A stretch of 64,000 nucleotides of DNA, taken from NCBI RefSeq assembly GCF_006345805.1, contig NC_042999.1, positions 97,092,001-97,156,000 of the forward strand, written 5' to 3'. The notes beneath the pieces are model-generated. The model saw only the letters and a program-made list of their open reading frames with translations. It had not been told where the DNA came from and made no database searches. This DNA is from Octopus sinensis. Taxonomy: Eukaryota. Shown piece after piece: positions 3,213 to 61,506 of this stretch (within the stretch, counting starts at the first letter, position 1; each line of letters starts with the position of its first letter). The position numbers and the translations under genes were made by a program.

Positions 3213-3459
<247 letters not shown>

Positions 3460-3632
3460 TTTATCCTTCACTTGTTTCAGTCATTGGATTGCAACCATGC
3501 TGGCAAACTGTGTTTGAAGAGTTTAGTCGAACAAATCGACCCAGTAATTATTCTATCCGTGTTTTTTATTACGTTGAAGCGACATAAACAAACCAACACC
3601 AGTTCTCAAGCGGTAGTAGGGACAAACACAAA

Positions 3633-3689
<57 letters not shown>

Positions 3690-4485
3690 AACACACAAAC
3701 ACGCATATACACACATGTGCGTGCAAGGTACTCAGTTGGAGATGCAGCTGTTGTTACTGGTATATAAATATTAATGTATATGAATCAGTGGTAGAGAATG
3801 CCGTTCTAAAGAGAGCCACTTTAACGGAAACAAATAAAAATGTAGTTGATCGGGTTAACTGATAAGGGACGTAATTCAGTTCAGTGAGCTTGCTATTTAC
3901 TTCCCTTATCAGCTTCATTCCAATATTAATGTAATTAATATTACATGTATGACTAGAGTAACTTTTGTCCTTCCCGTTAACGTTACTATAGTTGCTGACG
4001 CTACTTCTTGTGTTGCTGCTACCGGTGTTGCTGTTGTTGTTTAACCCCAGGTCGACTCTCACTGAGAAAACTTATAAACAAAGGTATCCTGGCTGTATTT
4101 TGATTATGATTTGGCTATTATTTCAGTCAAGTCGAATAAATAGTACAGGTTACCTAATCGGCTTCTCTCCTATTGCTGTTATGAATGTTTCTTTTTTGTT
4201 GTTTTTTGTTTTGATTTCTTTTTTCATTTTACTACTACCTCAGCGAATGATGACTTTTTTGTATTTTGTTTGCCTTTTTTTAGCCCCAGGTCAAATCTGA
4301 TTGAAGTAGACGTGATCAAAAGCATTCCAGCATCAACAACTCTTGCTTTTTAGAAGTATGAAGGACTACATTATCTAATATATATTTTCATTTCCCAAAC
4401 AGTTTTAATTTGAGGAATTATTTGGTGTTACTTCTAACAGATCGAGCGACCACATAGAGGCTCCCTCTTTTGCTCATAATGCTGC

Positions 4486-25863: not shown

Positions 25864-26465
25864 AGAAATATGAATTTCTTACTATTACTCACACACACAC
25901 ATACACAATCTGATATACTGAAAAGTTTGTCGGGCTGTAATAAACTTGGTGTACACAATTAAAATATGCATCTGTGTACCATACATAACTTATATACACT
26001 CGTGAGTCACTGATGAGACGATGTTTGCCTCACTCCCATATATACTGCGTTTTCTACACAGCATGTCTAGGAAGAGCTTTTCTCTTAGCCAAAAACACGT
26101 CATCATGTCTTTCAATGGTATGGTACACAGACGGCTATTTTAAGTTAATACTGTTTCAGATGCGTACATCGGATTTATCACAGCCCGACAAACTTTCCGC
26201 AATATCAGTGACTGAGTTGTTTATTGCTTTCAATATATCGGAGAGCATAAATTCCACATAGACATGTAAGAAGCGAGTTCATATTCTTGGCAAGGTCCAA
26301 GAAAGCCGAAACGTATCTAGTGTCCTCGTGAATCACTGCAAATGTTTGCCTCGCGCTGATATATATAGCGTTTTTAACACACGTCTATAAAGTGATTTCC
26401 TTCAGACAAAAAACACAGAAGCATATTTTCGGTGATCTATATACGTTAAGCAGAGTGCACAGATG

Positions 26466-26684
26466 GCTACTTTATGGCGTACTCCTGTAATCTAGCTACT
26501 CAGAGATTTCTTTGGTTGGTTGTCAGCTTTGAGGATGGAGTCCTGATGGTCGATTTTCTATGGTGACCGGGTGTCTGCGCTAAGTTCGGTAGACAAAATA
26601 CCCCGAGTCGAGCTGTAGTGCGATCGCACCTGTGAACAGTCGTCAGCTAGCAGCCTGTTCAATACAACTGAACTCCAACCTCTT
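26466..26684 (+). pseudogene. 7SL (SRP) RNA-derived sequence with internal deletion of the central S domain
   Basis: Four colinear blocks match metazoan 7SL as recalled: TGGCGTACTCCTGTAATCTAGCTACTC; GACCGGGTGTCTGCGCTAAGTTCGGT; CAAAATACCCCG...GTAGTGCGATCGCACCTGTGAACAG; CAGCCTGTTCAATACAA...CCAACCTCT. Length is ~219 nt versus ~300 nt for full 7SL. Confidence 0.8.
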
Positions 26685-26687
26685 CAT

Positions 26688-27092
26688 AGGCGCAGGTGTG
26701 GCTGTGTGGGAAGAAGTTGGCTTCCTAGCCACATGATTCCGGGTTCAGTCCCATTGCGTAGCACCTTGAGCAAGTGTCTTCTGCTATAGCCCCGTGCCCA
26801 TCAAAGTCTTTTGATAAGCGGAAACTGAAAGAAGCCCCATCCCCATATATATGTGTATATGTGTGTATGTATCTGTCTATCTATCAATCAATCTATCTAT
26901 TTATAAGTGTGTGCATGTGCTTGTGTTTGTGCTTGTGCTTCTCTACGTTGCCTACGTCGACCGATTTGGCAAAAGAGACCGATAAAACAACTGTCAGGTT
27001 TTAAAATCGAAGTACTGGGGGGTCGATTCGCTCGACTACAGTCCTTCAAACTAGTGCCCCAGCGTGGCCATGATCAACTGACTGAAACAATA
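26688..27092 (+). mobile_element. tRNA-derived SINE, family C (AGGCGCAGG.GTGGCTGTGTGG head)
   Basis: Head with CCGGGTTCAGTCCC B-box-like motif, GCACCTTGAGCAAGTGTCTTCT core, internal TG/TA microsatellite and CCAGCGTGGCC...TGACTGAAACA 3' end. Related copies at 32788-33210, 29690-29850 (-), 31630-31740, 3465-3635 (-). Confidence 0.85.
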
Positions 27093-27116
27093 TATGTGTG
27101 TATGTATACACACACA

Positions 27117-27153
<37 letters not shown>

Positions 27154-27438
27154 ACAGCCACACACACACTAATTTTTCATGCAGTCACTCCTGGCCAGCT
27201 CATCATTAAAATGAGGCTGTCCAATTGGAAATATTACTAGCCGACGGTAGATCAGAGATTCTTCTTCTCATCCTAGTCACAGATTATTAACTATGGCCAG
27301 CGGGTGGTTAAAATTTTTATGGATATAAATCCTATGCTCATTCAGCTTTGTGAACTGATATTGTTTACTTGATTTTTAGTGAAATGCTATCTCTAAGAAA
27401 TTGGCTGTCGTTAATTTTACGTTAGTAGTTGATTAAGA

Positions 27439-28369: not shown

Positions 28370-29415
28370 AGTGGTGGTGATAGTGGTAGTGGTTTTGGTG
28401 GTGGTTGTGGTGGCGGCGGTTGTGGCGGCGGTTGAGGCGGTGGTTGTGGTGGTGGTGGTGGTGGTGGGAGGATATGTAATTGTGATGGTTTATTGTGGTT
28501 GTTGTGATGTTTATTGTTGTTGTTGTAGTGGTGGTGGCGCTGCTGCTGCTGTTGCTGCCGTTGTAGTTGTTGTAGTTGTAGTTGTGGCTGTGGTGGTGGT
28601 AGTGGTGGTGGTGGTGGTGGTAGTGGTGGTGGTGGTGTTGGCTGTGGTTGTGGTGGTAGTGGTGGTGACGGTGGCAGTGGCGTTAATTGTCAGAGTTGTG
28701 GTGGGGGTGGGGGTAGAAGATGGTGGTGGTCATGTATGTAGTGCTATATAGTGCTGATGAGGAGGTGGGAAAGATGTTAAGTAACGAGGGGGTGTTCGTG
28801 GCTACAATCTCCAGTATTTGAGTAATGTCCGCTAGAATAACATGAACAATAGTAACAATAACAACACCAACAATAACTACCACGACTACTACTACTACTA
28901 CTACAAAGACGACAACGATGACACCAACAAACTGAAGAAAAAAGAAAAACGGAATTGTCATATAGAAGAAAAGAATGTATCGACCAATAAATATTGACAT
29001 TTGAAGAGGTTTACGGGTTTTTTCGGCATTTTTCGGTGCTCTCTGAACAATCATGTGACTGGTTAACTATCAGGGGGTAATAGTAGGGAGAAACGGTAAT
29101 GTTAGTGGTGGTGGTGGTGGTGGTGGTGGTGGTGGTTTTGGTGGTGGTGGTGGTGGTGGTGGTGGTAGCGGCGATGGCGGCGGTGGTATTTGCAGGAGTT
29201 ATTGGGGTGGCTGTGAAAATAGTTTGGAGATACGTATGATGGTGGCTGTCGTGAAAGTGATAGTGGTGATAGTAGTGATAGTGGTGGTGGTGGTGGTCGT
29301 CGTGGTGGTTGTGGTGGTGGTGGTGGTGGTGTGGCGGCGGCGGCAATACTTTTGTTATTGTTGCTACTGATGTTTCTGTTGTGTTGTGGTTGTTGTTGTT
29401 GTTGTTGTTGTTGTT
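28370..29415. repeat. Compound trinucleotide low-complexity block (GTG/GTT/GTA, ACT/ACA)
   Basis: Directly visible; source of the poly-V, poly-T and poly-H ORFs. Confidence 0.95.
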
Positions 29416-30141
29416 GCTTAGAATCAAGTTAACCCTGATTAAACAGACCTATGATCAAAGGTGTTCCAGCCATAGCCATCCCGTCTTTTTATGAGGGTCA
29501 ATTTTTATGGCCACATTCCCAGTAATCTAAGCCTACATTAGCTAATGTTTTCTTTTGCATGAGTGCTAGTGTGAATTAAGGGAGACACCCACATGATAGT
29601 GTTGTTGTTGTTTTTGTTGTTGTTGTTGTTGTTGTTGTTCTTCTTCTTCTTCTTCTTCTTCTTTTTTTTTTCTTCTTTTCTTTTTCTTCTTGGATCCTTT
29701 CAGTTCCTGTCTACCAAATCCACCTACAAGACTTTGGTTGGCCAGGGGCTATAGTAGAAAATATTTGCCCAAGGCGCCTCGCAGTGGATCTGAACCCAGG
29801 ACCACTTGGTTGTGAAGCAAGCCTCTTAATCATACAGTTATGCTTGCACCTATAATTCTTCTTCTACAACCTCTCCTTGTTCCTCACCTTATTCTTCCTT
29901 TCCATCGCTTCCACATTGCCCTACCTTCTCATTCTGTCGGCACTGCGTCCACCCACTGATCTCATCTCCCTTCCACCCCAACCGAAGAAACCTCTATGCG
30001 ATTGTTCGTCTGTTAGAGATAGTAGTCACCATCTTAAAGAAGTGAAGGACTTGTTTGATATATATGGTTGAAACACCTTTAGCATAGGGCTGCTTCTCCA
30101 GAAATTAGCTAAGGTTAAAATTATAATTCAAATAACAGTCG

Positions 30142-32751: not shown

Positions 32752-32950
32752 CTAGGTAGGATCAATAAGTATCCGGACCGTTGCTGTAGGCGTAGGAGTG
32801 ACTGTGTGGTAAGTAACTTGCTAACGAACCACATGGTTCCGGGTTCAGTCCCACAGCGTGGCACCTTGGGCAAGTGTCTTCTACTATAACCTCGGGCCGA
32901 CCAAAGTGAGTGGATTTGGTAGACGGAAACTGAAAGAAGCCCGTCGTATG

Positions 32951-32990
<40 letters not shown>

Positions 32991-33730
32991 AATGTATGTA
33001 TATATGTATATATGCATGTATGTATGTGTGTGTATATGTTTGTGTGTCTGTGTTTGTCCCCCCCCCCCCAAACATCGCTTGACAACCAATGCTGGTGTGT
33101 TTATGTCCCTGTAACTTAGCGGTTCCGCAAAAGAGACCGATAGAATAAGTACTAGGCTTACAAAGAATAAGTCCTGGGGTCGATTTGTTCGACTAAAGGC
33201 AGTGCTCCAGAGAAAATTGTCAAGGCGATACCTGCTCAGAGACCCGCGCAAAGTTGCAGAAATCGTATGGAGAAATCGTATGAGCCGTACACAAGTGTAC
33301 AAGTGGTTCAGACCTTTCCAAAATGGCATAAAAATGTCGATATTGATGAACGTTCTGGGAGACCTGCAACCAGCAGAATTGAGAAAAATATCGCAGATGC
33401 GCGTGCAGCTGTGAAGGGAAATCGTCGAATCACCATCCATGAGTTATCAGACGAAGTGCAGATTAGTTACAGTTCAGTTCAGTCCATTACCACTGAAGAT
33501 TCGGGTAAGAGACGTGCGTCTGCCAAGTTTGCGCCAAAACTGCTTTCAGCTGAGGAAAAAGACATTCGGGTTTCAGTTGCAGAAGATCTCCTTGATTGTG
33601 TCGAGAACGATGAAAACTTTTTGAAAACTTTGCGTAGAGCTCTGAGCAACTATCGCTAGGCTTTAGATAAAATTTGATGCAGACTCTCTGTTCAACTTTC
33701 CCTGTCAGGGTCAATGCGACGATCACTTAT
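32752..33730 (+). mobile_element. Mariner (Tc1/mariner) element relic: left TIR, transposase N-terminal HTH region and an inverted copy of the N-terminus; interrupted by a family C SINE
   Basis: GATCAATAAGTATCCGGAC TIR-like motif at ~32760. Frames read MSRTQVYKWF and DERSGRPATSRIEKNIADARAAVKGNRRITIHELSDEVQISYSSVQSI..RRASAKFAPKLL. The minus strand at 33630-33705 reads KVEQRVCIKFYLK. Confidence 0.85.
32788..33210 (+). mobile_element. Family C SINE, 3'-truncated, nested in the mariner relic
   Basis: AGGCGTAGGAGTGACTGTGTGGTAAG...CCGGGTTCAGTCCC head; ends abruptly at GTGCTCCAG. Confidence 0.9.
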
Positions 33731-36974: not shown

Positions 36975-38450
36975 TCTAAAAGTTCTAAGAATCCATCAGG
37001 TCAGCCGCCTGCATTTCATTGCCAACTTAGCAACATGCACATGGAAGGATGCATCATTACTCATGTAAATATCCAGGTCTCGCACTGACTGTGTCTCTGG
37101 AATTGCAATCCCTCCAGGTCCAGTGTATTTACTTGGTATTGCATTTAGTTCTGCATGCTGATGGCACAAGGCTTGAAACTTTTCAATATTAAACTGCATG
37201 CTATTCTTTTCAGCCCACTTGTATATTTCATCCAACTCACGTTGCAGGTGCATAGTATCTTCAGGGTTCTGTATCACCTGTGAGACTTTTGTATCATCTA
37301 CATAACTTGTGATTGTGCCTCTCCGTGTGGTTGAGGGCATATGTGAGAGGGCCATTATGAATAGTAGTGGTCCCAAAACAGTGCCTTGCGGAACACCGCT
37401 CACTATTTGCATGTCATTAGAGGTTACTACTACTACCTTCAGAAAGTCACGTGATCATTCTCCCAATTTTCCGACAATGCCGTTCGTGACCCATCATTCC
37501 GTGATCAACTTTATCGAAGGCCTTTGCAAAGTCGAGATATACCACTTCCACATTTGAGTGGTTGAGCAGCTGCTCCAAAACCCAGTCATAGTATTGTAAG
37601 AGCTGAGTCAGGAAGCTTCTTCTGGTCGGGAACCATATTGGGTATCAGTCAGCAAGTCATTTTCCTCAAAGAAGGTGATTAGTTTTCTTCTGACTATTCG
37701 TTCCATGACTTTGCTGATGTGCAAGGTCAGAGAGATAGGTCTGTAGTTTTGGGCCTCTGCTCTGCTACGTCCTTTATGAATAGGGCATATTTTACCCGCC
37801 TTCAGCTTACTTGGAAGTTTGCCAGTTGCAAGGAAGCTCTGAAAGAGGGACGGCAGTGGTCTTGCTAACATGCTTTTAGAAAGATTGCTGGAAATCTATC
37901 AGGGCCAGTAACTGAGTTCGAGTTAATTTCATCTATAGCCCTTATTACATCGTCTTCTTTTATATTGATGTTATCAATCATCACTGCCTATTTTTATATC
38001 TGCAGCGGTAAAACAAAAAGTCAGCTGCATTGCTGACTTGCAAGTATCCTAGGGGTGGAGTGAAAAGGCTTTTGAATTGTCCATTTAGTATTTCACTTAT
38101 CCTCATTGGGCTTCCTGTGGGTGAACCATCTTTTTCGAGTAGTGGCCCCACCCTGCAGTGCACTAAGGCTGTTTCTTTGACAAACTTGTGGAAGGCTCTG
38201 GGGTTAGATTTTACATTGTCTATAGCCCAAATTTCTTTGTCTGCTCTTTCTTTTTCCTGGGAGGGTTGCAGATGTTTTTCAATCTCCAGTAGTTATATTT
38301 TCAGGCGGGATTTTTCACTACTTTCAATTTGTTTGTTTAGGCGATTTGAAATTTTTGTACGCCGTCTCATAAGAATTTTCCTCTCTCTAAGGATTTTGTT
38401 CTTGTGTACAGTGGCCTTTCACTCCGGGACACATTTGTAGCATATGGCTT
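36975..38450 (-). mobile_element. CR1-group LINE fragment (pre-RT and RT core), truncated at both ends
   Basis: NYRPISLTLHISKVMERIV..TQYGSR; SGVPQGTVLGPLLF..SYVDDTK..LQRELDEIYKWAEKNSMQFNIEKF. Frameshifted, with an internal deletion. Confidence 0.9.
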
Positions 38451-41039: not shown

Positions 41040-44000
41040 GTTAAGCTTTTGGGTCTATGTCATCGTATAACTGCCTCCCATAAAAATTGCCAATCTTGAA
41101 CCAAAATATGAAACAAAATTATTACTACTCGGAAAGACGAGTGGACAATGAAAAAGACTATTGACACTAAGAAAGACTTGTGGAGGCTGTGGACTTACAA
41201 TCCTCGCCTTTGTAACATGTAACAGATACCATGATTGGCTGAGAGGAGGGAGTCGAGAATCAATCAAACCCAGTTAACACTGAAATGACCTTGGACACGA
41301 ATACGGCTATTCATTCGAACAGCGAAAGTAGTGCAAACAACTTTGGATGCAATCTGTGCTGTAGGACCTTTGCAACCGAGAAAGGCACCAAGGAAAGACT
41401 TGTATGAAGAGGACAGAGCAGTAAATCATCCCCGGACTCAAACCACTGCGGATTGATAAATGCTACAGCAAATACCTCTTCCCGACAAGAAACTGCAAGT
41501 TATGAAACTGGTGCATCAGATAGTACTCGGAAGAAACCGAGGGTTCTGTGGCCTGCTGCTAATGAGAAAGGAAAATATAAAGAGTTTGAAAACAAGTTAT
41601 GTCGATCTCTTTATAACATGACAGACTCTACAGCGGAGAAACTGGGAAAGTTAACAAGCTCAATATACGATACAGGAAAGGAGTTATTTGGCGTGAAAGA
41701 TAGTATCCGATTAGCGAAAGGAAAGTATGGATCAAGCGGGAGGATCAGGAAAATGAAACAGTTGAGGAAGGAAAAGCCCAGCCTAAGAAAGTGATGGAAA
41801 AGTGCTGCAGAAGACAAAAAACCTGGCCTCGCGCTGCTGTACAACAATTTGAAAAGGAAATGCCGTTATGTGCAACGACATATCCGCCGATATGAATGAC
41901 GAAAGGAAAGTAAAAGGACTCGAGGTCATTTTCTGAAGGATCTGTATGGAGTTACTAAGAAGCTGCTCACTGAACCGAAGAGTGGCACTTTATCGTGCAC
42001 GAAAGAAGAATTGGACGCTCATATGAAAGAAACCTGCAGCGACCTGCATCGTAACCAGCCACTGCCACCTCTAAATGGGCTAAAGCATCTCTTGGAACCT
42101 GATATCGAATTTCAAATTGGGGACATCAGGGAGAAAGATGTGAATGAATTCGTGAGAAAAGCTAGAGCAAAGAGTGCCCCGGGAGGTGATGGCGTCTCGT
42201 ATAAAGTATACACATATTACAATCGTCTGCGAAAGAAGCTCTTTGTTCTATTCCGACAGCTGTGGCGCGAAGAGACTCTTGTAGAGGATTGGTGTAAGGC
42301 AGAAGACATATACCTGCCGAAGGAGGCCAATGCAGAGACTATGAAACAGTTTAGGCCGATATCCTTATTGAATGTGGAAGGCAAGATCTTTATAGGAATT
42401 CTCTCGAGAACAGTGACATATTTACAGAGTAATGAATATGTTGAATCTGTTCCAAAGGCCGGAATCCTTGGAATCCCTGGATGCGTTGAACACTGTTTTT
42501 CGATTTGGAAAGAGATCCAGTATGCCAAACAGAACGAGAGAAGTCTGGACGTGGTATGGCTTGACCTAGCTAATGTTAATGGCTCAGTGCCACACGAATT
42601 ACTGATGAGAGCCATGGACCACTTCCACATTCCAGAATAAGTAACTAAAATAATGAGGATATATTATGACAGTTTCGAGATAGGTTTGCAGCTGGAGATT
42701 TTACAACAGATTGGCACCGATTGGAGATTGGCAATGCTGCTGGCTGTACAATATCTGTCACGTGGTTTATCATAGTTGTGGAGATGATTTTGAAAGCCGT
42801 GGATTTTTCGGAACAAATCGCCCATGGACAATCGCCTAAGAAAGCCTTCATGGATGACGTGACACTTCTATCAACAGACAAGTAAATCATGCGGAGTGCC
42901 CTCTTGGGACTAGACGAACTTGTGAGGTGATCAAGGATGTGGTTTAGAGCAAAAAAGTCGCGTAGTCTGACACTTGTTAAGGGAGTGCAGAAAGAAGTTA
43001 AGTTTCGAATAGCTGAAGAAAGCATTCAAACGTCAAAGAATAACCCGTCAAGTTTGGGGCAAGCATATACTGCAACATTATCTGATAGGAATGAAAATTA
43101 TAAAACAAGCTGAGGTTCGATTATCAGCGATTGACAACTCAAAGTTATCAGGTAAATATAATATTTGGTGCTTACAGTACGGCTTGTATCCGAGACTTTC
43201 GTGGCCACTTTTAATATACAAGGTAGCATTGTCACGAGTTGAAATCATTGAACAAAAATGTAAAGTTTCCATTAGAAAGTGGCTAGGCCTACCTCGGATA
43301 TTGAGTGGTTCAGCTCTTTAGGTTAAAGAGGCTCGTTGCAGTTACCACTGGCGTCAATAGTCGAAATATATAAACTGGGGAAGGTACGAACAGTGATGAT
43401 GCAGAGAGTCAAAATGGAAATCAGGCGCAATCCACGAGATGTGAAAACAGCTAAGAATTGGAAAGCAGAAGCAGAGACTGATGACATCCTGTCTTCTCGT
43501 ACACACCAAGATATGGTGGGTGCAACGCAAATTCATCGGAAGGGACTTTGTTTTGGCGCAGATCAATTCCGACCGTTTGAAAGTATGATGCGGAGCAAAC
43601 GCAGATCTTTTGTTAGCAACAGTGTCAAAATGAGGGAAGCAGAGAGAGGAGAGTTTCATTTAATCCAATGCATTCAACAAGGACAGATGACAAGATGGGA
43701 GAAATATGTTGTTGAGAGGAAAATAAGTTGGGATGAGATATAGAGGTGGACCACATCTCGGCTAAGTTTTCTGATTCGTTCATGCTATAATAATTTGCCA
43801 TCACCTGCAAATCTAGTAAGATGGAATGTCTCAGAGAATGATATATGCAAATGCTGAAAGATCGGAACACTGAAACATATTCTTTCCAACTGTTCACTAG
43901 CATTGAACAGGTATACAGGGAGACACAACCTGGTCCTTAAGGTTATCTTCAATTCTATGAAGAACCAAATTTATCTCAACAACTGAAAAAAGAACCGTTG

Positions 44001-44680: not shown

Positions 44681-44959
44681 ATTTATATTACAATGTATGT
44701 GTTTTTTCTAATACCTGTGAACAGAATACTAACCATGCCTGCGCTGGTGTAATACGTGTGTTTTTTTGTATGTGTGTTTATATGTGTATATGTATGCATA
44801 CATGTAGATAATCTATCTTGCTTTGAGTGTAATCTGTGAGTTTACTCTCTGGCTCCAAAACCTAAGTGTTTTCCTGAATTACTCGCGATTTCACATGATA
44901 TTAATGTGAAGATTTGAAGGTTTGATAATCCAGCGGAATGAACATGTTCCGATTGCTTG

Positions 44960-44968
44960 TGTGTGAGT

Positions 44969-45062
<94 letters not shown>
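44960..45062. repeat. (GT)n microsatellite
   Basis: Directly visible. Confidence 0.97.
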
Positions 45063-45065
<3 letters not shown>

Positions 45066-47944
45066 TACGTGTTTATACGTATGTATGAGAGAAACAGAAA
45101 ATGGAATTCATAAGAATATTCATCACAACGATCGTTTCGACCCTTCTTGCAGGTGGGATACTATACAACTGGTTGTGGTGCAATGGTGGCTACAACTTAC
45201 GAGTATCACCAGGAAAATAAAATAGAACGCTAATTTAATTTTTGAATAGCTTCATGAATAATTGTCCAACAAAGGAATTCAATTTAATCGCAATATTTTG
45301 TAAACTCTCCTTGAGCTAATATCGCAGCTTTCACTTGATTAGGCATAGTTTTGATAAAATTATGGGTGACAGATTGATCCTACTTTTCATTCAATGCTTC
45401 TTTTAGTTCTATAATTAATGTAATTGATATAGATTTTTGACGAACTTACTTGTAATCACCTATCAAGATATTCCTATGTATGTTGCATTGAATTAAGATC
45501 GAAGATTTCAGAAATTTGATTCCGTGGATTCTTGCTTGTTTAGCATGAGTTGCGTCTTATATTGATCTTTTCATCAATTCTTATATTAGGACAGATCGAT
45601 AAGATACCTTTTTTCAATATTTAAGAGCATTTTAATCCATGTAAATGATTTTCAATAAAAATTAGCTCCAATCTGTGTGTCGCTCAGACTGACTCCCCTT
45701 TCCATACAAAACTTCAACGTCTCCATTTTGAGCAGTTCCTTGCAAACAATCTGATTCATGCTTCATATATATTTTCATATATTTTTACCTTGATTTGGAA
45801 AATTGTCAGAATATACTTTCAGGAGACCATATTAATGATGACCAAATTTCGTCTAATATAACCCTTTAACCTAATCGACTCAACTGGTTTTATATGCTAT
45901 TGAAATTTTTGGCTTCTTTCTTGCATTTTTTCGTTCATACCAACGTGTGATGTTCTTACGCAATATGGTAACATGCCCATAGAATTTACAACCTCTCTAA
46001 CAATTCCAGGTCAATGTGTAATACCGTTCCCTTTAACTGCCCTCTTTGTCCTCTTAACAACTTTCTGTGCCTCACTCCCAAATTCACTCAGCAATTTCCA
46101 TCTTCAATCAAGCTCTTCACTATATTATCCAGTGTTTCATATGAATACTGAAACTCAGATATTCCTTGACTTGGTTTGTCACATTGATACCAGCCGATGA
46201 CTTACCCGTGTGTAAATTGATCGATATCTTTTTCCCAATTGTTTTCATAGTTGTAAATCCAAAAACAATTAAGCTCATGTATGTACCTACAAAAAAGGGA
46301 AATATATCTAATTAGAGAAAGAAAACGAAAAATCAATGGTTGAATTGTGTTCGTCCATGCGCGCGTATGAGTGTATGGTTTAAAATTTTCCATAGGTCAC
46401 TTTATGTGTGTGTTTGTGTGTGCACGCGTGCGTGTACAGATTTGTTTGTATGCAGATACACATTAACATGTATATATGTGTATCTTTCTTTGAGGGCAGT
46501 TTTCTGTGTGTTTTGTTATTCTGCTTACCAATTATCAATATAGGGTGAAGTGAGGTAATTGACACAAACACAAGATGTTGATATTTATATAACATCATCA
46601 GTTTCCAGTGTCAAAATTATTTTTCTTAGTAGAATGTCGTTATACGTTTATCACTGTCATGCATGCACTATGTATGCCTGCGCAAGTGCATGTGTTTATG
46701 TATGAATGTATGTATGCATGTATATGTGTATGTATTAGGAAAGCATCTGGGTAGATGTATGTGTGTGTGTGTGTATTATGTATGTGCTTAATTGTACATA
46801 TGTATGCATTTATATATTTATGTGTCATTTAACGGTAACTGATATCATGTATAAAAAATGAGGATAAGAGTCGCCGGAACTGGAATTACCCATAAGACAA
46901 AATGACATTTCGTTAATATAGAGAACATATTCCAGTATATTATTACATATATTCTTTATTAAGCTATTATTATGCTATACATACACAAATATGCATTTAT
47001 ATATATTATAGTATGGCAGTCGCTATGTGGTAGCAGCGTGTGGTGGAGTGTGAAGCAGGAAACGTTTTTAAAATCAACAAATTCGTTAACTCCGTTCACT
47101 CGACTTTACTCAAACAAACGTTAATAGGACGAGAGACGTCATCTTTCTGTTGCTTTAATTCACTGAAACATCCTGTACATCATCACCTCTTCTGCCATCG
47201 TGACTTTCACTATCTTTACTGTCGCTATTGCTACCATCTCTATCATGCGCATCAACCCCATCGTGAGGAAAAGGCTAAAAAAAGGGAAAATTCTTAGGTG
47301 TTCGACTAAGTTCACTTTCGAATATCATCGGTTTCCAACGGACTTTGGATTTTACCCTGAAGAAGGGAAAAGTTGAGGGAGAGATTATTATGATGAGAAG
47401 AGAGAGATTGGGGGTGCGGGGTGTGATTTCAAGTTCATGGTATATGAAGAGGCTAATAGTTTATGTAAGTATAGCAAATGAGAAGGGGTGTTGTAATCTG
47501 AGAGACTGATGTTGATTTTAGCGGAACAGATAGGAGAGATTATGGTGCAAGACAAGGAATGACGGCATGGCGGCGGACGTACTGTATTTACATTTTGTGT
47601 TTAGTGAACGAGCTGACTAGGTGCAGATTCGTGGGTGTTCAGTGTAGTTGATCAATAGCCAAATGGCAAGGTGTAATATAACGGTTGTGTGTCTCTATGT
47701 TTGTGTACATGCGTACTTTTATTTGCTGTATACGTGTATTTGAGTATCTGTGTGTTGTGTGTATGTTCATGTGTGTTTGTACGTGTGCTCATGTGTCTTT
47801 ATGTGTGCATGGATTTTGTAAATGCGTGTGCTTGTGTATGTGTGTATGTATCTGCGTTTTGAGCTTCTGTGTGCGTGTGTGAAGGAATTTATGTATTTGT
47901 GCGCGCGTGTGTGTATGTGTGTGTATGTGCGTGCGTGTATGTGT

Positions 47945-54817: not shown

Positions 54818-55293
54818 GTGTGTAATTGAGTATTGAATTACTGGTTAGGTTTGTTATATTCTATTATCCTGAAGATCTTTTATTATATTGCAAAAGTGGG
54901 GAATGTATATTCTTGGTGTTCCAATCTTCAATAAAAGAATCAAGTTCTCTTATACTTATTTGCAACTTTTTTTTATTACCTCTGCCTTCTCGAAGGTGGA
55001 GGTATTGTTTTCAGTCGCGTTTGTTTGTTTTCAAGTACCGCTGGAAGTATTCGGATGAAACTTTCAGGGATGTTTGGCCTTGTGACTGGCACAAACTGAT
55101 TAGATTTTGGGATTCGGTACCAGACAAGGATTCTGGATTCTTTTCTACTCTAGGCACAAGGCCCGAAATTTGGGGGGAGGAGGCCAGTCGATTAGATTGA
55201 TCCCAATACGCAACTGGTAATTAATTTATCGACACCGAAAGGAGGAAAGGCAAAGTCAACCTCAGCGGAATTTGAACTCAGAACGTAAAGACA

Positions 55294-56224
55294 TAGTTTG
55301 TTTTCTTTCTCAATTAAGACTACGTCCGGCTTTCTATTCTCAATCTCATGGTCGCACTGAATCATAAAATCCCATAGGATCTTTGCATTTCTATTTTCGA
55401 CAATGCCTTCAGGTTTGTGGTCGTACCAATTTTTTACTCTGTCAAGTCCATACTTGTTGCAAAGTGTCCAATGGACAAGCCTGGCTATATTGTCGTGGCG
55501 TCTCTTATATTCCTTCTGGGCTAGTGGCGTACATTGGCTGGTAATATACCATACGGTTTCACCGTTTTTTCCACAGATTCTGCACTTATCACTTTCTGCT
55601 GTGTTGTCTATTCTGTATTTTATGTAGTTTGTTCTTAGTGCTTGTTCTTGGGCAGCACAGATTAGGGCCTCCGTTTCCGGTTTTAAATCACTTTTAGTCA
55701 TCCACAGCCATCTTTTTTCTCTGTCTGTGTTATCTTCAGCATCCCTATGAAATTGCCCATGTATTCTTTTCTTTATCCACCTATTTTCAGTTTCATTCGT
55801 TTTCAATTTCTTGTATAGTGCTTTATCTTTGCATTCTTTTATCCTACACAAGCCTGACCTTCTTACTTCTAATTATAGTGGTTCTATGGCATTTCTTACA
55901 TACCATGCAATGTTGTTTTCTTCTGCTCTAATGCTGTGTTCACATCCAATAAGTCCTCTTTCCCGCCTTTTTCTTGGTACATAGTCTGTCTGTGTCACTT
56001 TTGGGGTGGAGTGACCCATATCTAATTAACATCTTCCCTGTCTTACTGTCTAAGCTGTTTAGTGTGTCTACTGTCCATATGATTACTGCAGCTCCATATA
56101 TAAAGAGTGGAACCACCCAGGTGTTGATAGCTTCGATCTTATTCCTTCCGTTTAATTTCCACTTACGGATCAGTCTCAGTCAGCGTAAGTACTCCACCTT
56201 AAGTTTTTCTGTCATTTCTTTCTC
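55294..56224 (-). mobile_element. Second copy of the R4/Dong family seen at 12082-13436, 3' end replaced by a family A SINE piece (55140-55290)
   Basis: ORF 55192-55851 reads PETEALICAAQEQALRTNYIK..CRICGKNGETVWYITSQC..RHDNIARLVHW..ILWDFMIQCDHEIENRKPDVVLIEK, then runs into SINE sequence. Confidence 0.9.
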
Positions 56225-56649: not shown

Positions 56650-57155
56650 TATTATTCAGTAGTGTTATTTTTATCTGTGTGCCTTGGGTATGTACTGTGG
56701 TTTGTTGTGATGCTCTTATTTTTACTATATTGAAAGTGTTTTAAGTAAGATGTGTGCACTGTCTAGTAGTGCTATTTTCTGTATGTTGTATATACTTGTT
56801 AGTTCTGATGTTTTTGTTATGTATTTGTCTGAACATTTTTTTTATCATACCTAATGCGCCTACTATGATAGGAATTGTTTCTGCTTTTAGACTCCACATT
56901 CGAGTTACCTCTATTTCCAGGTCATTGTATTTTGAAAGTTTCTCCATTTCTTTTAGAGAAACGTTGTCATCTGTTGGTATTGATACATCAATTAGAAAGC
57001 ATTTTTTCTTCGTGATCTCTGACAATTATATTTGGCCTATTGGCCTTAATTTCTCTATCTGTGTGTATTGGCATATCCCATAGTATCGTTGCTTTCTCAT
57101 TTTCCGTGATCTTTTCTGGCGTGTGCCTATGCCAACTTTTTCTGTTGCTATTCCA
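56650..57155 (-). mobile_element. 3' fragment of a different R4/Dong-clade family (RLE domain)
   Basis: HTPEKITENEKATILWDMPIHTDREIKANRPNIIV / CFLIDVSIPTDDNVSLKEMEKLSKYNDLEIEVTRMW..IPIIVGALGMIKK. Confidence 0.85.
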
Positions 57156-57599
57156 TGCAAAAGCAATTACGGCTGTAACAGCAACAAAAGTAGTGAAATC
57201 AACAGCTACAAAAACACCGTCCTCGAGAACCCTCACAGTGCTAACAGCAGCAGCAACTGGAAGCCCCCAAATAACAACAGCAAAACAAAAAGGGAATGAC
57301 CGCACCCCGCTACCACAAGACCCTCCCTGCTTACACCAATAAATAGCACACAAACACACATAAAAATAGCATCGAAATCGCACAAAACTTATACAACGCC
57401 ATAAAAAGCAAATACCCAGACGAAGTAGGAAACTTCAGGGGGATATCAATAAAAGACTAAGGAAACAGTTGCATGTGGAAACACCCATAGGCAACCGGAG
57501 GGTTGAAACTCCTGTCCTTCCATAGAAATAAGATAAATTGGTCGTAAGTTGATTCTTTCTAACTTTCCTCTTTCCTATCGTACATTGTCGTACTCAGAA

Positions 57600-58568: not shown

Positions 58569-59088
58569 GTAAGTGACATAACATAAAAATTATCACTTAT
58601 ATGACATCCGCTTTGTGAAATAAAAGTCTTAACATTGTCAAAATCCTTTATCATAGATTTAATAAGTTCTCACGACTTCAAAGATTTATTCATCATACAA
58701 AACAACTAGGCAATCCGTCCTTCATCCACTCATTTCACATTTTTTCAGTTTGCTGTTACCTACACCACGCATTTCAGGTGACAAGATACCCACCATCAAT
58801 CCTTGCAACTAGTTGTTTAAAAACTCTATAGACTCAGCTCTGTCACTACATCACTGATAACGATATGTGTGTGTGTGTGTGTGTGTGGTGTGTGTGTGTG
58901 TGTGTGTGTGGTGTGTGTGTGTGTGTGTTTATGTAAATTTTTTTCAGCAGTAATATTTTATGTAGTCGTAAGTTATGGACGGTCAGAAAGCTACTACTGG
59001 TTTTATGTCTGTTATTGTTCTTTATAGACGTGAAATCAATGTTAATTTTCTGACCGGCCACAACTTTTGACTACATTACACACACACA

Positions 59089-59148
<60 letters not shown>

Positions 59149-59796
59149 ACACACATAAAGTCATAAATAACAGTGAAATAGTTTGATAAAATTATATTCA
59201 AATTTCACAAATTGTTTCGTAACTTAAAAACATGTAAATAAGTTATGCTATTATATTTAATAATTCAAGGCCTTATGCCTAGAGTGAAAATAATTATTAT
59301 ATTTAATAATAAATAAATTACTTACATGAACGCACTGATGCCAAATGCAAAAACCCTTTCAAAATAACGCAGAATTTAAGCTACGTCCTCAGGTGAAAGT
59401 CATCCTTAATCTTTTCAATTTTGACTTTGCTTTACGTCGAGAATTTAGTATTTAACAAAGACGTTTTTTCACCAGTGGGCGTAACTTAAATTCTGTATTA
59501 TTTTGAAAGACTTCTTACTTTTGGCATTAATGCAGACATGTAATTTATTTATTATCAAATATAATTATATAAATCATTTACACATTTGTCGTGATATTTT
59601 AATTTTCTTATTGCTAAATAAAATTTCATCAAACTATTTCTCTGCCATTTATGATTTTATATTCTCATTATAGTTCCGTCTTGTATTATACTATATATTC
59701 TATGTTTTGTAGAATGATACGTTAAGGAGCTTTTTTATGAGTACTTCCGGACTATTTAAATTTATATATTGTGACTTTACATATATATATATATAT

Positions 59797-59857: not shown

Positions 59858-60354
59858 AGGGAATACTCAGCACAGAAGTATCAAACAGTTCAATTTTCAT
59901 GAATTGAGAATTATATGTGAAAAATCATTTATTGAATGCAATGTTTTAAATATATATCTATGTCAATGACATGTTACATTTTCTAGGTGAATAAAATCAT
60001 TATACTCATCAAAGATGCCGGTAAATAGATACTTGTAAGGAGAAATTTTGTAGTAATCTGTTACTCGTGTGCTTTAAAGAAATATATGTATATGTGTATG
60101 TACGTATGTATGTATGTATGCATGTATGTATGTATGTATGTATGTATGTATGTATGTATGTATGTATGTATGTATGTATGTATGTGCGTGTGTGTATGTG
60201 TGTGTATGTGTATGTGTGTGTGCGCGTATGTATAAGTAGCTCCAATTCATCTTGCTTGGTAAAGTAGTCGAAGCTCTGGTCCATTACAAACTTCACTGAA
60301 TTTAACGTGATTTAACATGAATTAAACAACATACATACATACATATATACTTAT

Positions 60355-60412
<58 letters not shown>

Positions 60413-60930
60413 AAAAAAGAAGTTTGAAAACGCCACTATATTGGATAAATTTTAATTTTCTTATGAATTTTACATGTTTCGGTTCTTGTTTGCTTTTATA
60501 CTCAGTTATAATAAAAAACAATTTTACATTAATCTGATAGGTTACTCTATAATTTTGTAGATTACAAATTTATCATTTGTAAAGAAGACTGTTGTTGATA
60601 ACGACTTCGAAGTTTCGGCAAGCTAAGCCATCGTTATATTCTTATACAAGAATGTTGTTGAGAGTGCCTTGGATGTTTCAGCCATCTAAACCATCGCCGG
60701 GTTGCCCAACGATGGCTTAGCTTGCCGAAACTTCGAAGTCGTTATCAACAACAGTCTTCTTTACAAATGATAAATTTGTAATCTACAAAATTATAGAGTA
60801 ACCTATCAGATTAATGTAAAATTGTTTTTTATTATAACTGAGTATAAAAGCAAACAAGAACCGAAACATGTAAAATTCATAAGAAAATTAAAATTTATCC
60901 AATATAGTGGCGTTTTCAAACTTCTTTTTT

Positions 60931-61003
<73 letters not shown>

Positions 61004-61506
61004 AGTATATATGTATGTATGTATGTTGTTTAATTCATGTTAAATCACGTTAAATTCAGTGAAGTTTGTAATGGACCAGAGCTTCGACTACTTTACCAAG
61101 CAAGATGAATTGGAGCTACTTATACATACGCGCACACACACATGCACACACATACACATACACACACATACACACACGCACATACATACATACATACATA
61201 CATACATACATACATACATACATACATACATACATACATGCATACATACATACATACGTACATACACATATACATATATTTCTTTAAAGCACACGAGTAA
61301 CAGATTACTACAAAATTTCTCCTTACAAGTATCTATTTACCGGCATCTTTGATGAGTATAATGATTTTATTCACCTAGAAAATGTAACATGTCATTGACA
61401 TAGATATATATTTAAAACATTGCATTCAATAAATGATTTTTCACATATAATTCTCAATTCATGAAAATTGAACTGTTTGATACTTCTGTGCTGAGTATTC
61501 CCTTAC
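59855..61506. mobile_element. 1.65-kb fold-back (palindromic) element: arms 59855-60635 and 60708-61506, 72-bp spacer
   Basis: Arms are reverse complements (GTAAGGGAATACTCAGCACAGAAG.../...CTTCTGTGCTGAGTATTCCCTTAC). The differences I saw are in internal microsatellite lengths. The left end abuts (TA)n 59781-59854; the right end is followed by ATATA. Confidence 0.95.

Follow-up and report, generated by a model that had tools for sequence, protein, structure and literature searches.

A decayed, centrally deleted 7SL pseudogene joined end to end to a tRNA-derived SINE in the genome of Octopus sinensis

Introduction

Chimeric retrogenes in which small RNAs, 7SL among them, form the 5' part and retroelements the 3' part have been described from mammals and fungi (PMC2104539; bioRxiv 10.1101/2025.02.02.635956). 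Examples include the U6-L1 and 7SL-L1 chimeras of mammals and the WEIRD-MGL/Mg-SINE 'MINE' elements of Magnaporthe, template switching by a LINE reverse transcriptase being the mechanism involved (PMC2104539; bioRxiv 10.1101/2025.02.02.635956). Such a switch is recognised by a 5' part that is a full-length copy of a cellular RNA and a 3' part that is a retroelement, usually 5'-truncated, the two being joined directly in one transcriptional orientation and the whole bracketed by short direct repeats (PMC2104539). A second relevant precedent is the hagfish element SINE1-1_EBu, a proven family with 2,363 full-length copies, target-site duplications of ~17 bp and an RTE-derived tail (PMC7245038). 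Neither a mollusc 7SL/SINE template-switch chimera nor a cephalopod or octopus 7SL SINE was found in the literature searched.

The locus considered here lies within a 64,000-nt stretch of the Octopus sinensis genome (RefSeq assembly GCF_006345805.1, contig NC_042999.1, positions 97,092,001 to 97,156,000 of the forward strand), hereafter termed the window, to which all coordinates refer unless stated otherwise. An earlier note, compiled from the letters of this DNA, had drawn attention to a 7SL derivative lacking its central domain. The most informative feature of the locus, overlooked by that note, is the end-to-end fusion of the 7SL-derived segment with a tRNA-derived SINE.

The 7SL-derived element and its central deletion

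A covariance-model search with Metazoa_SRP (RF00017), named in the earlier note as a means of checking the 7SL assignment, was run with cmscan against Rfam at permissive thresholds, and returned an RF00017 match with full model span (E = 3e-17). The match occupied 26469-26683 on the + strand and model positions 1-299, and scored 69.9 bits, equivalent to E = 2.9e-17 in a 1.2-kb scan and 1.6e-15 in a scan of the whole window. Because the curated gathering cut-off for RF00017 is 70 bits, the 7SL-like copy, being 0.1 bit under it, was absent from the gathering-threshold scan, a shortfall that results from the deletion and decay described below. Judged from the sequence, the 7SL homology of 26469-26683 is nevertheless certain despite the sub-cut-off score. 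The principal features of the element were as follows.

26462-26588, + strand: 7SL 5' block, comprising a degenerate 5' strand of helix 2/3, then the Alu-domain motifs UGGC, CCUGUAAUC and AGCUACUC, and proximal helix 5 (5' strand), which ends GCGCUAAGUUCG
26554-26557, + strand: internal TTTT run, a potential premature RNA polymerase III stop; the homologous stretch of the 7SL comparator has no T4
26580-26605, + strand: deletion junction, CTAAGTTCG followed directly by GTAGACAAAATACCCCG, placed from the model and comparator alignments
26589-26684, + strand: 7SL 3' block, comprising GUAGA, left over from the 3' strand of helix 8, then the helix 5 3' strand and the tail CCAACCUCUU
26685-26686, + strand: CA linker, the 2 nt that separate 7SL from the SINE

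In all, ~219 nt of 7SL remain in the copy, and the final model position, 299, corresponds to 26683. The model alignment placed the Alu-domain motifs that contact SRP9/14, namely the UGGC loop, the UGUAAU turn and the AGCUACUC loop, intact at 26475-26501. The proposal of a 7SL derivative in a mollusc, with Alu-domain motifs and proximal helix 5 retained, was thus confirmed by the RF00017 alignment, the repeats of the host DNA being octopod, and the blocks quoted in support of it were found in place (CTAAGTTCGGT at 26580-26590 and CAAAATACCCCG at 26594-26605).

A full-length 7SL comparator (L004; 211 bits) was recovered by using two conserved 7SL blocks as metagenome queries. It lies on the 2.2-kb metagenome contig Ga0182043_1325144 at 1913-2197 on the - strand, at the contig end, and is metazoan and nearly complete; the contig stops short of its 5' end, and no T-run follows its 3' end. 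Divergence and ends were judged against this comparator and the Rfam model, not against the octopus's own 7SL gene, and on that basis identity was 68% over 113 columns for the 5' block and 65% over 94 columns for the 3' block. Measured in this way against the comparator, both blocks exceed the SINEBase identity level for 7SL-derived SINEs (SINE1) of at least 60% to 7SL RNA over at least 60 nt (PMC3531059).

In the Metazoa_SRP alignment, ~99 central model positions (3+40+7+46+3) were replaced by the 18 nt TAGACAAAATACCCCGAG, while pairwise alignment with the comparator resolved the same loss as a single clean gap, exactly 81 nt long, that falls between 26588 and 26589. The missing segment comprises distal helix 5 on its 5' strand, the whole of helix 6 and almost the whole of helix 8. 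The earlier estimate that ~80 nt had been removed, and with them the S domain that binds SRP19 and SRP54, was accordingly borne out by the 81 nt missing relative to the comparator. The accompanying suggestion of a (T)CAA microhomology required revision: since the GTAGA preceding CAAAA aligns with GCAGG of the helix 8 3' strand, the right breakpoint lies ~5 nt upstream of the supposed (T)CAA, and what remains relative to the comparator is a microhomology of 1-2 nt (G). A 40-mer across the junction and a 22-mer from the Alu domain were each single-copy within the window. A 16-mer, AGACAAAAAACACAGA at 26404-26419, resembles the junction-spanning AGACAAAATACCCCGA at 26591-26606 with 13/16 matches, a resemblance probably due to chance.

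Structural decay and loss of function

Mapping of the Rfam consensus pairs onto the copy retained 85 model pairs, 56 of them canonical, 19 mismatched and 10 gapped. The damage fell mainly on helices 2 and 3, in their 5' strands, and was otherwise dispersed along helix 5; the comparator, in its own model alignment, carried far fewer non-canonical marks (~10% by a rough hand count). The folding energy of the copy was unexceptional (z = -1.1) and its box-A region was disrupted.

Nor does the copy end as a polymerase III transcript would require: no T-run directly follows the 7SL 3' end, where CTCTT is succeeded by the CA linker and then the SINE. The 3' tail CCAACCTCTT is likewise devoid of a T-run, and the nearest runs of at least four T residues begin at 26554 (internal), at 26809 and 26999 (both within the SINE) and at 27173 (past the SINE).

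The copy is therefore a non-functional 7SL pseudogene, since helices 6 and 8 are absent, only 56 of the 85 retained pairs are canonical, a T4 run interrupts it and no T-run terminates it; on its structure a working SRP RNA gene is excluded. It is very improbable indeed that the locus instead encodes a working short RNA of 7SL-like (Alu-domain) type. The conserved Alu-domain loop motifs and a TATA-like box at a plausible upstream distance would suit such a gene, but a quarter of the retained pairs are broken, helices 2 and 3 are damaged, folding is unremarkable, T4 lies within the body, and the first terminator downstream of it is one inside the SINE.

The adjoining SINE and the end-to-end junction

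Immediately downstream of the 7SL 3' block lies a full-length tRNA-derived octopus SINE, whose 5' terminus was defined from six other copies as (A)TAGGCG[CT]AGG, that is, (A)TAGGCG[CT]AGGAGTGGCTGTGTGG, and falls here at 26686/26687. Its parts, and the T-run beyond it, were delimited as follows.

26687 to ~27169, + strand: full-length tRNA-derived octopus SINE, with the 5' terminus taken from the six other copies
26687-26844, + strand: SINE head and body, with an A-box-like TGGCTGTGTGG and a B-box-like GGTTCAGTCCC
~26845-26937, + strand: SINE internal microsatellite
~26938-27091, + strand: SINE 3' region, conserved and ending GACTGAAACAA
27092-27169, + strand: SINE terminal TG/CA microsatellite
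27173-27177, + strand: T5 run, 3 nt past the SINE tail, which may be a displaced 7SL terminator

As far as the citing papers (PMC4758252, PMC4824008) describe them, the octopus SINEs OK, OR1 and OR2 of Ohshima & Okada 1994 have tRNA-like A and B boxes and microsatellite tails, as does the element here. A tRNA scan called no tRNA, the SINE head being too diverged to be recognised as such, and this copy as a whole was 14% diverged from a small consensus. A second copy occupies 32787-33200 of the window. A 130-aa open reading frame (33267-33659, + strand) adjoins that second copy and by eye is like the N-terminal helix-turn-helix of a mariner-type transposase; no Pfam family scored above threshold for it.

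Octopod DNA for comparison comprised two loci of O. bimaculoides (L002 and L003, GCA_001194135.2; 49.6 kb together) that were reached through annotated proteins matched by SINE-derived peptides; repeats shared with the window number over 100 for each locus and are up to 92% identical. Four further loci (L001 and L005-L007), from a sampling via LINE-protein homologues, had almost no repeats in common with the window and were rejected from the octopod sample as not octopod. SINE copies occur approximately every 10 kb in the window and the O. bimaculoides loci. Two of them, at 10041-10230 of L002 and 14460-14659 of L003, lie inside annotated gene ranges, the host genes being LOC106868758, which codes for a Myb-domain protein, and LOC106871914. 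SINE-derived peptides also matched two O. bimaculoides proteins (P0121 and P0122), reflecting either an exonised SINE or a gene-model artefact.

The SINE starts 2-3 nt past the last 7SL model position (26683) and on the same strand. None of the six other copies has 7SL upstream of it, and their 5' flanks are unrelated. With 5'-intact, same-orientation copies present at ~1 per ~32 kb of the 113 kb sampled, the frequency with which a SINE would land by chance in a 5-nt window is ~1.5e-4, a rough estimate that assumes random insertion; at such a rate, the juxtaposition of 7SL and SINE needs a mechanism.

Origin of the junction

The locus is tentatively interpreted as a solitary, old and dead 7SL pseudogene that arose, as the likeliest single route, as a chimeric 7SL-SINE retrocopy through template switching by a reverse transcriptase. 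On this interpretation, a LINE reverse transcriptase copying tRNA-derived SINE RNA at a genomic nick would have reached the 5' end of that RNA, jumped to the 3' end of the abundant 7SL RNA, and proceeded to copy toward the 7SL 5' end. The product would read 5'-7SL-SINE-tail-3' along a single strand, its two parts not separated by a polymerase III terminator. The 81-nt deletion might then reflect either a second jump over the structured S domain during the same event, or an ordinary DNA deletion at a later time. Both the switch and the timing of the deletion are what we infer from the observed identity, decay, deletion and junction.

Several features are consistent with this proposal. The parts are directly joined and share an orientation, as expected of a template switch (PMC2104539), being 2-3 nt apart and both on the + strand, and the 3' part is a retroelement copy, here a SINE of full length rather than a 5'-truncated one, so that the switch would have come at the end of the template. 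A comparison of the 14% divergence of the SINE with that of the 7SL part, the latter a rough estimate from pair decay, suggests that the two are of similar age.

Against the proposal stands the lack of a convincing target-site duplication, flank alignments being no better than shuffles for the composite and for the SINE alone. The best candidate for the composite, AGT(G)CACAGAT, matches at 10/11 nt between 26454-64 and 27275-84 (empirical p 0.014-0.03, uncorrected and for one anchor) and is not significant, and its downstream member lies 105 nt beyond the SINE tail. No clear target-site duplications were found around younger SINE copies either.

The principal alternative, which is considered unlikely, is that a real 7SL gene was duplicated at the DNA level together with its promoter region, that a SINE inserted into its T-run terminator, and that the 81-nt deletion and decay followed. 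Such a history would account for the T5 run 3 nt past the SINE tail, where a run of at least five T residues within 8 nt has a chance frequency of 2.6% of positions: joining 26684 to 27175 would read CCTCTTTTTCATG, the canonical 7SL end plus terminator, and so restore the canonical ending CCUCUUUUU. It would nonetheless need a full-length, same-orientation SINE to have inserted within a few bases of the 3' end, at the same estimated ~1.5e-4 under random insertion. No T-run preference is seen in the 5' flanks of the six other SINE copies, and around the SINE alone there is no target-site duplication beyond the 5-mer TTCAT.

The remaining evidence for a gene duplicate comes from the 5' side, which contains two features of note.

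26326-26488, + strand: local repeat unit, comprising upstream flank and the first 7SL-like bases and containing the TATA-like box
26438-26443, + strand: TATATA, a TATA-like box that precedes the putative 7SL start by ~22-27 nt

The position of the TATATA, at about -22 to -27, is one that a 7SL promoter element might occupy, and 7SL homology plausibly extends to position 1; the chance frequency of TATAWA at -33..-22 is 2.8% of window positions. The flank and 5' end have moreover been copied locally in both direct and inverted form, so that DNA duplication was active here. The unit at 26326-26488 aligns with 26000-26154 at ~75% identity, as a diverged duplicate, and its last ~50 nt, from the TATA-like box via GGCTACTTTA to GTACTCC, are also present in inverted form at 25910-25996. 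The motif GT[AG]CACAGA[TC]GGCTA[TC]TTTA accordingly has three local occurrences, and was found neither in the remainder of the window nor in the fetched loci. Just upstream of the 7SL-like element lies an inverted pair, 25910-25996 and 26108-26208, that is 76-88% complementary, and a direct duplicate ~321-334 bp downstream reaches the 7SL start. The repeat structure formed by 25910-26224 and 26326-26488 has no counterpart in the O. bimaculoides loci or at any other place in the window.

By way of contrast, the same repeat weakens the case for a promoter, since the other two copies have no 7SL and run on instead into ACAGCCCGACAAACTTT; the box therefore need not be a promoter, and its promoter role, inside a local repeat, is unproven. 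The notion that degenerate 7SL follows those two copies was examined and rejected, as alignment scores were no better than those of shuffles (p = 0.31-0.98).

These observations also bear on the statement in the earlier note that both 7SL ends had been kept, which holds for the 3' end only. At the 5' end, the first ~11 nt are poorly matched and fall within the local threefold repeat: the alignment reads 'ACU-----UUA' over model positions 1-11, the point at which genuine 7SL homology begins can be placed only within 26450-26476, and, as the TATA-like box and the first 10-25 '7SL' bases belong to the local repeat, retention of the 5' end is insecure. A short homology may have allowed a 5'-truncated 7SL cDNA to join the local repeat, or else the promoter-proximal sequence of the locus may have been duplicated afterwards. 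Duplication of flank and first element bases at the DNA level means that DNA rearrangement, and not only retroposition, shaped the locus, which counts against the retrocopy proposal.

Taken as a pair, the TATA-like box and the T5 run resemble the outer parts of a genuine polymerase III gene into which a SINE has inserted, and to that extent count against a retrocopy. This coincidence and that of SINE placement are judged to be of similar size. The chimeric retrocopy was preferred to the gene duplicate because an exact junction of RNA end to RNA end then needs no special assumption.

Copy number and the question of a SINE family

It was also considered whether octopods have a SINE family with a 7SL head (SINE1), of which the element would be one old copy or the fossil founder, the head lacking the S domain and the body and tail coming from the tRNA-SINE. 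The only tail on the 7SL-SINE unit is that of the attached tRNA-SINE. The architecture has some appeal in this respect: a centrally deleted 7SL head on an older tRNA-SINE parallels hagfish SINE1-1_EBu (PMC7245038), the missing terminator between the parts is a requirement for composite read-through, and the SRP9/14-contacting UGGC, UGUAAU and AGCUACUC are retained. As hagfish SINE1 arose as a chimera of 7SL head and tRNA-SINE, the arrangement here is a possible starting intermediate for a SINE1.

Against this stand the results of the copy-number searches. Even at permissive thresholds there was no other 7SL-like match in the remaining 63.8 kb of the window, and neither BLAST nor the covariance model detected one in the 49.6 kb from O. 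bimaculoides, although a DNA sample of this size (~113 kb) excludes only families of more than ~70,000 copies. A 20-mer across the deletion junction had 0 matches in the metagenome collection. A 28-mer from the octopus SINE gave 0 matches in viral contigs and prokaryote genomes, collections presumed to hold little or no octopod DNA. At the protein level, no exact match was obtained for the 34-aa open reading frame that spans the junction or for a nearby one of 151 aa, and concatenated six-frame translations of the element had no match at E<=1 among 5.8 billion proteins.

The six other SINE copies with their unrelated 5' flanks argue in the same direction, as does the restriction of reported SINE1 elements to primates, rodents and hagfish (PMC10886601; PMC7245038). 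This particular copy is, in addition, unlikely to be a source gene, since a T4 run interrupts it, its box-A region is damaged and its pairs have decayed. Membership of a SINE family is thus regarded as improbable, and a single one-off pseudogene as most likely.

As a one-off, the locus represents an ordinary dead small-RNA pseudogene, of modest value as a cephalopod case of 7SL and SINE joined end to end. The joining of 7SL to a SINE is nevertheless the kind of accident thought to create new SINE heads, as with hagfish SINE1 and the 'jigsaw' SINEs of molluscs. Should a family prove true, it would constitute a third independent origin of SINE1, the previous two being those of Euarchontoglires and of hagfish, and the first one among protostomes; were the junctions multicopy, they would indicate that 7SL-derived SINEs can arise in protostomes, and would support the repeated recruitment of the Alu domain for retroposition.

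Other features of the window

Fragments of non-LTR retrotransposon open reading frames were located at 36996-37412 (- strand), 42011-42640 (+ strand), 55192-55851 (- strand) and 56988-57383 (- strand), one of them with an RVT_1 match. The 219-aa frame at 55192-55851 had 414 homologues at E<=1e-20, mostly unnamed ENA entries, the few named ones being from coral and sponge; the best identity was only 69-78%, from which it follows that the LINE copy is an old one.

Microsatellites of the TG/CA, TATC and TA types are very abundant in the window, for example at 3214-3700, 27092-27169, 44958-45086, 58862-59151 and 60080-61280. Dozens of Rfam miRNA matches, including mir-297, mir-3149, mir-1277 and MIR2646 (81.9 bits), were all below their family cut-offs and were discarded as microsatellite artefacts. 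A further ~1 kb of trinucleotide-type low-complexity sequence at 28371-29427 would translate to poly-Val/Ala from one strand and to poly-Thr/His/Asn from its complement.

Comparison with known systems

Considered as a chimeric retrocopy, the octopus locus resembles U6-L1, 7SL-L1 and MINE in having a small-RNA 5' part, a retroelement 3' part, a direct join and no terminator between the two. It differs from them in that the 3' partner is a full-length SINE and not a 5'-truncated LINE, that the 5' partner has both an 81-nt internal deletion and poorly matching first ~11 nt, and that the locus has no demonstrable flanking direct repeats.

With hagfish SINE1-1_EBu (PMC7245038) it shares a centrally deleted 7SL head attached to older tRNA-SINE sequence, and a host outside Euarchontoglires. 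The hagfish element, however, keeps 96+44 nt (140 nt) of 7SL and has had its tRNA head replaced (PMC7245038), whereas the octopus copy keeps ~219 nt and precedes a complete SINE whose tRNA head is present. The corresponding 7SL losses are ~150-160 nt in hagfish, as we estimate from the 140 nt retained (PMC7245038), and 81 nt here; and the former is a family, the latter a single decayed copy.

Comparison with the progenitors of Alu and B1 (FLAM, FRAM and PB1) and with human 7SL pseudogenes relied on Ullu & Tschudi 1984 and Ullu & Weiner 1984 as reported by the papers that cite them. To the extent that those accounts describe them, these elements too are 7SL-derived, with S-domain sequence lost and Alu-domain motifs kept. 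The Alu-like loss of the S domain proposed in the earlier note stands as regards the missing domain; judged by the 140 nt that hagfish SINE1 retains, the octopus deletion is about half the size of those in Alu, B1 and hagfish SINE1. On the same accounts, the octopus copy differs from these elements in that its deletion, approximately half as large, has left the proximal half of helix 5 in place, and in that it combines a decayed structure with neither an A-rich tail nor evidence of amplification.
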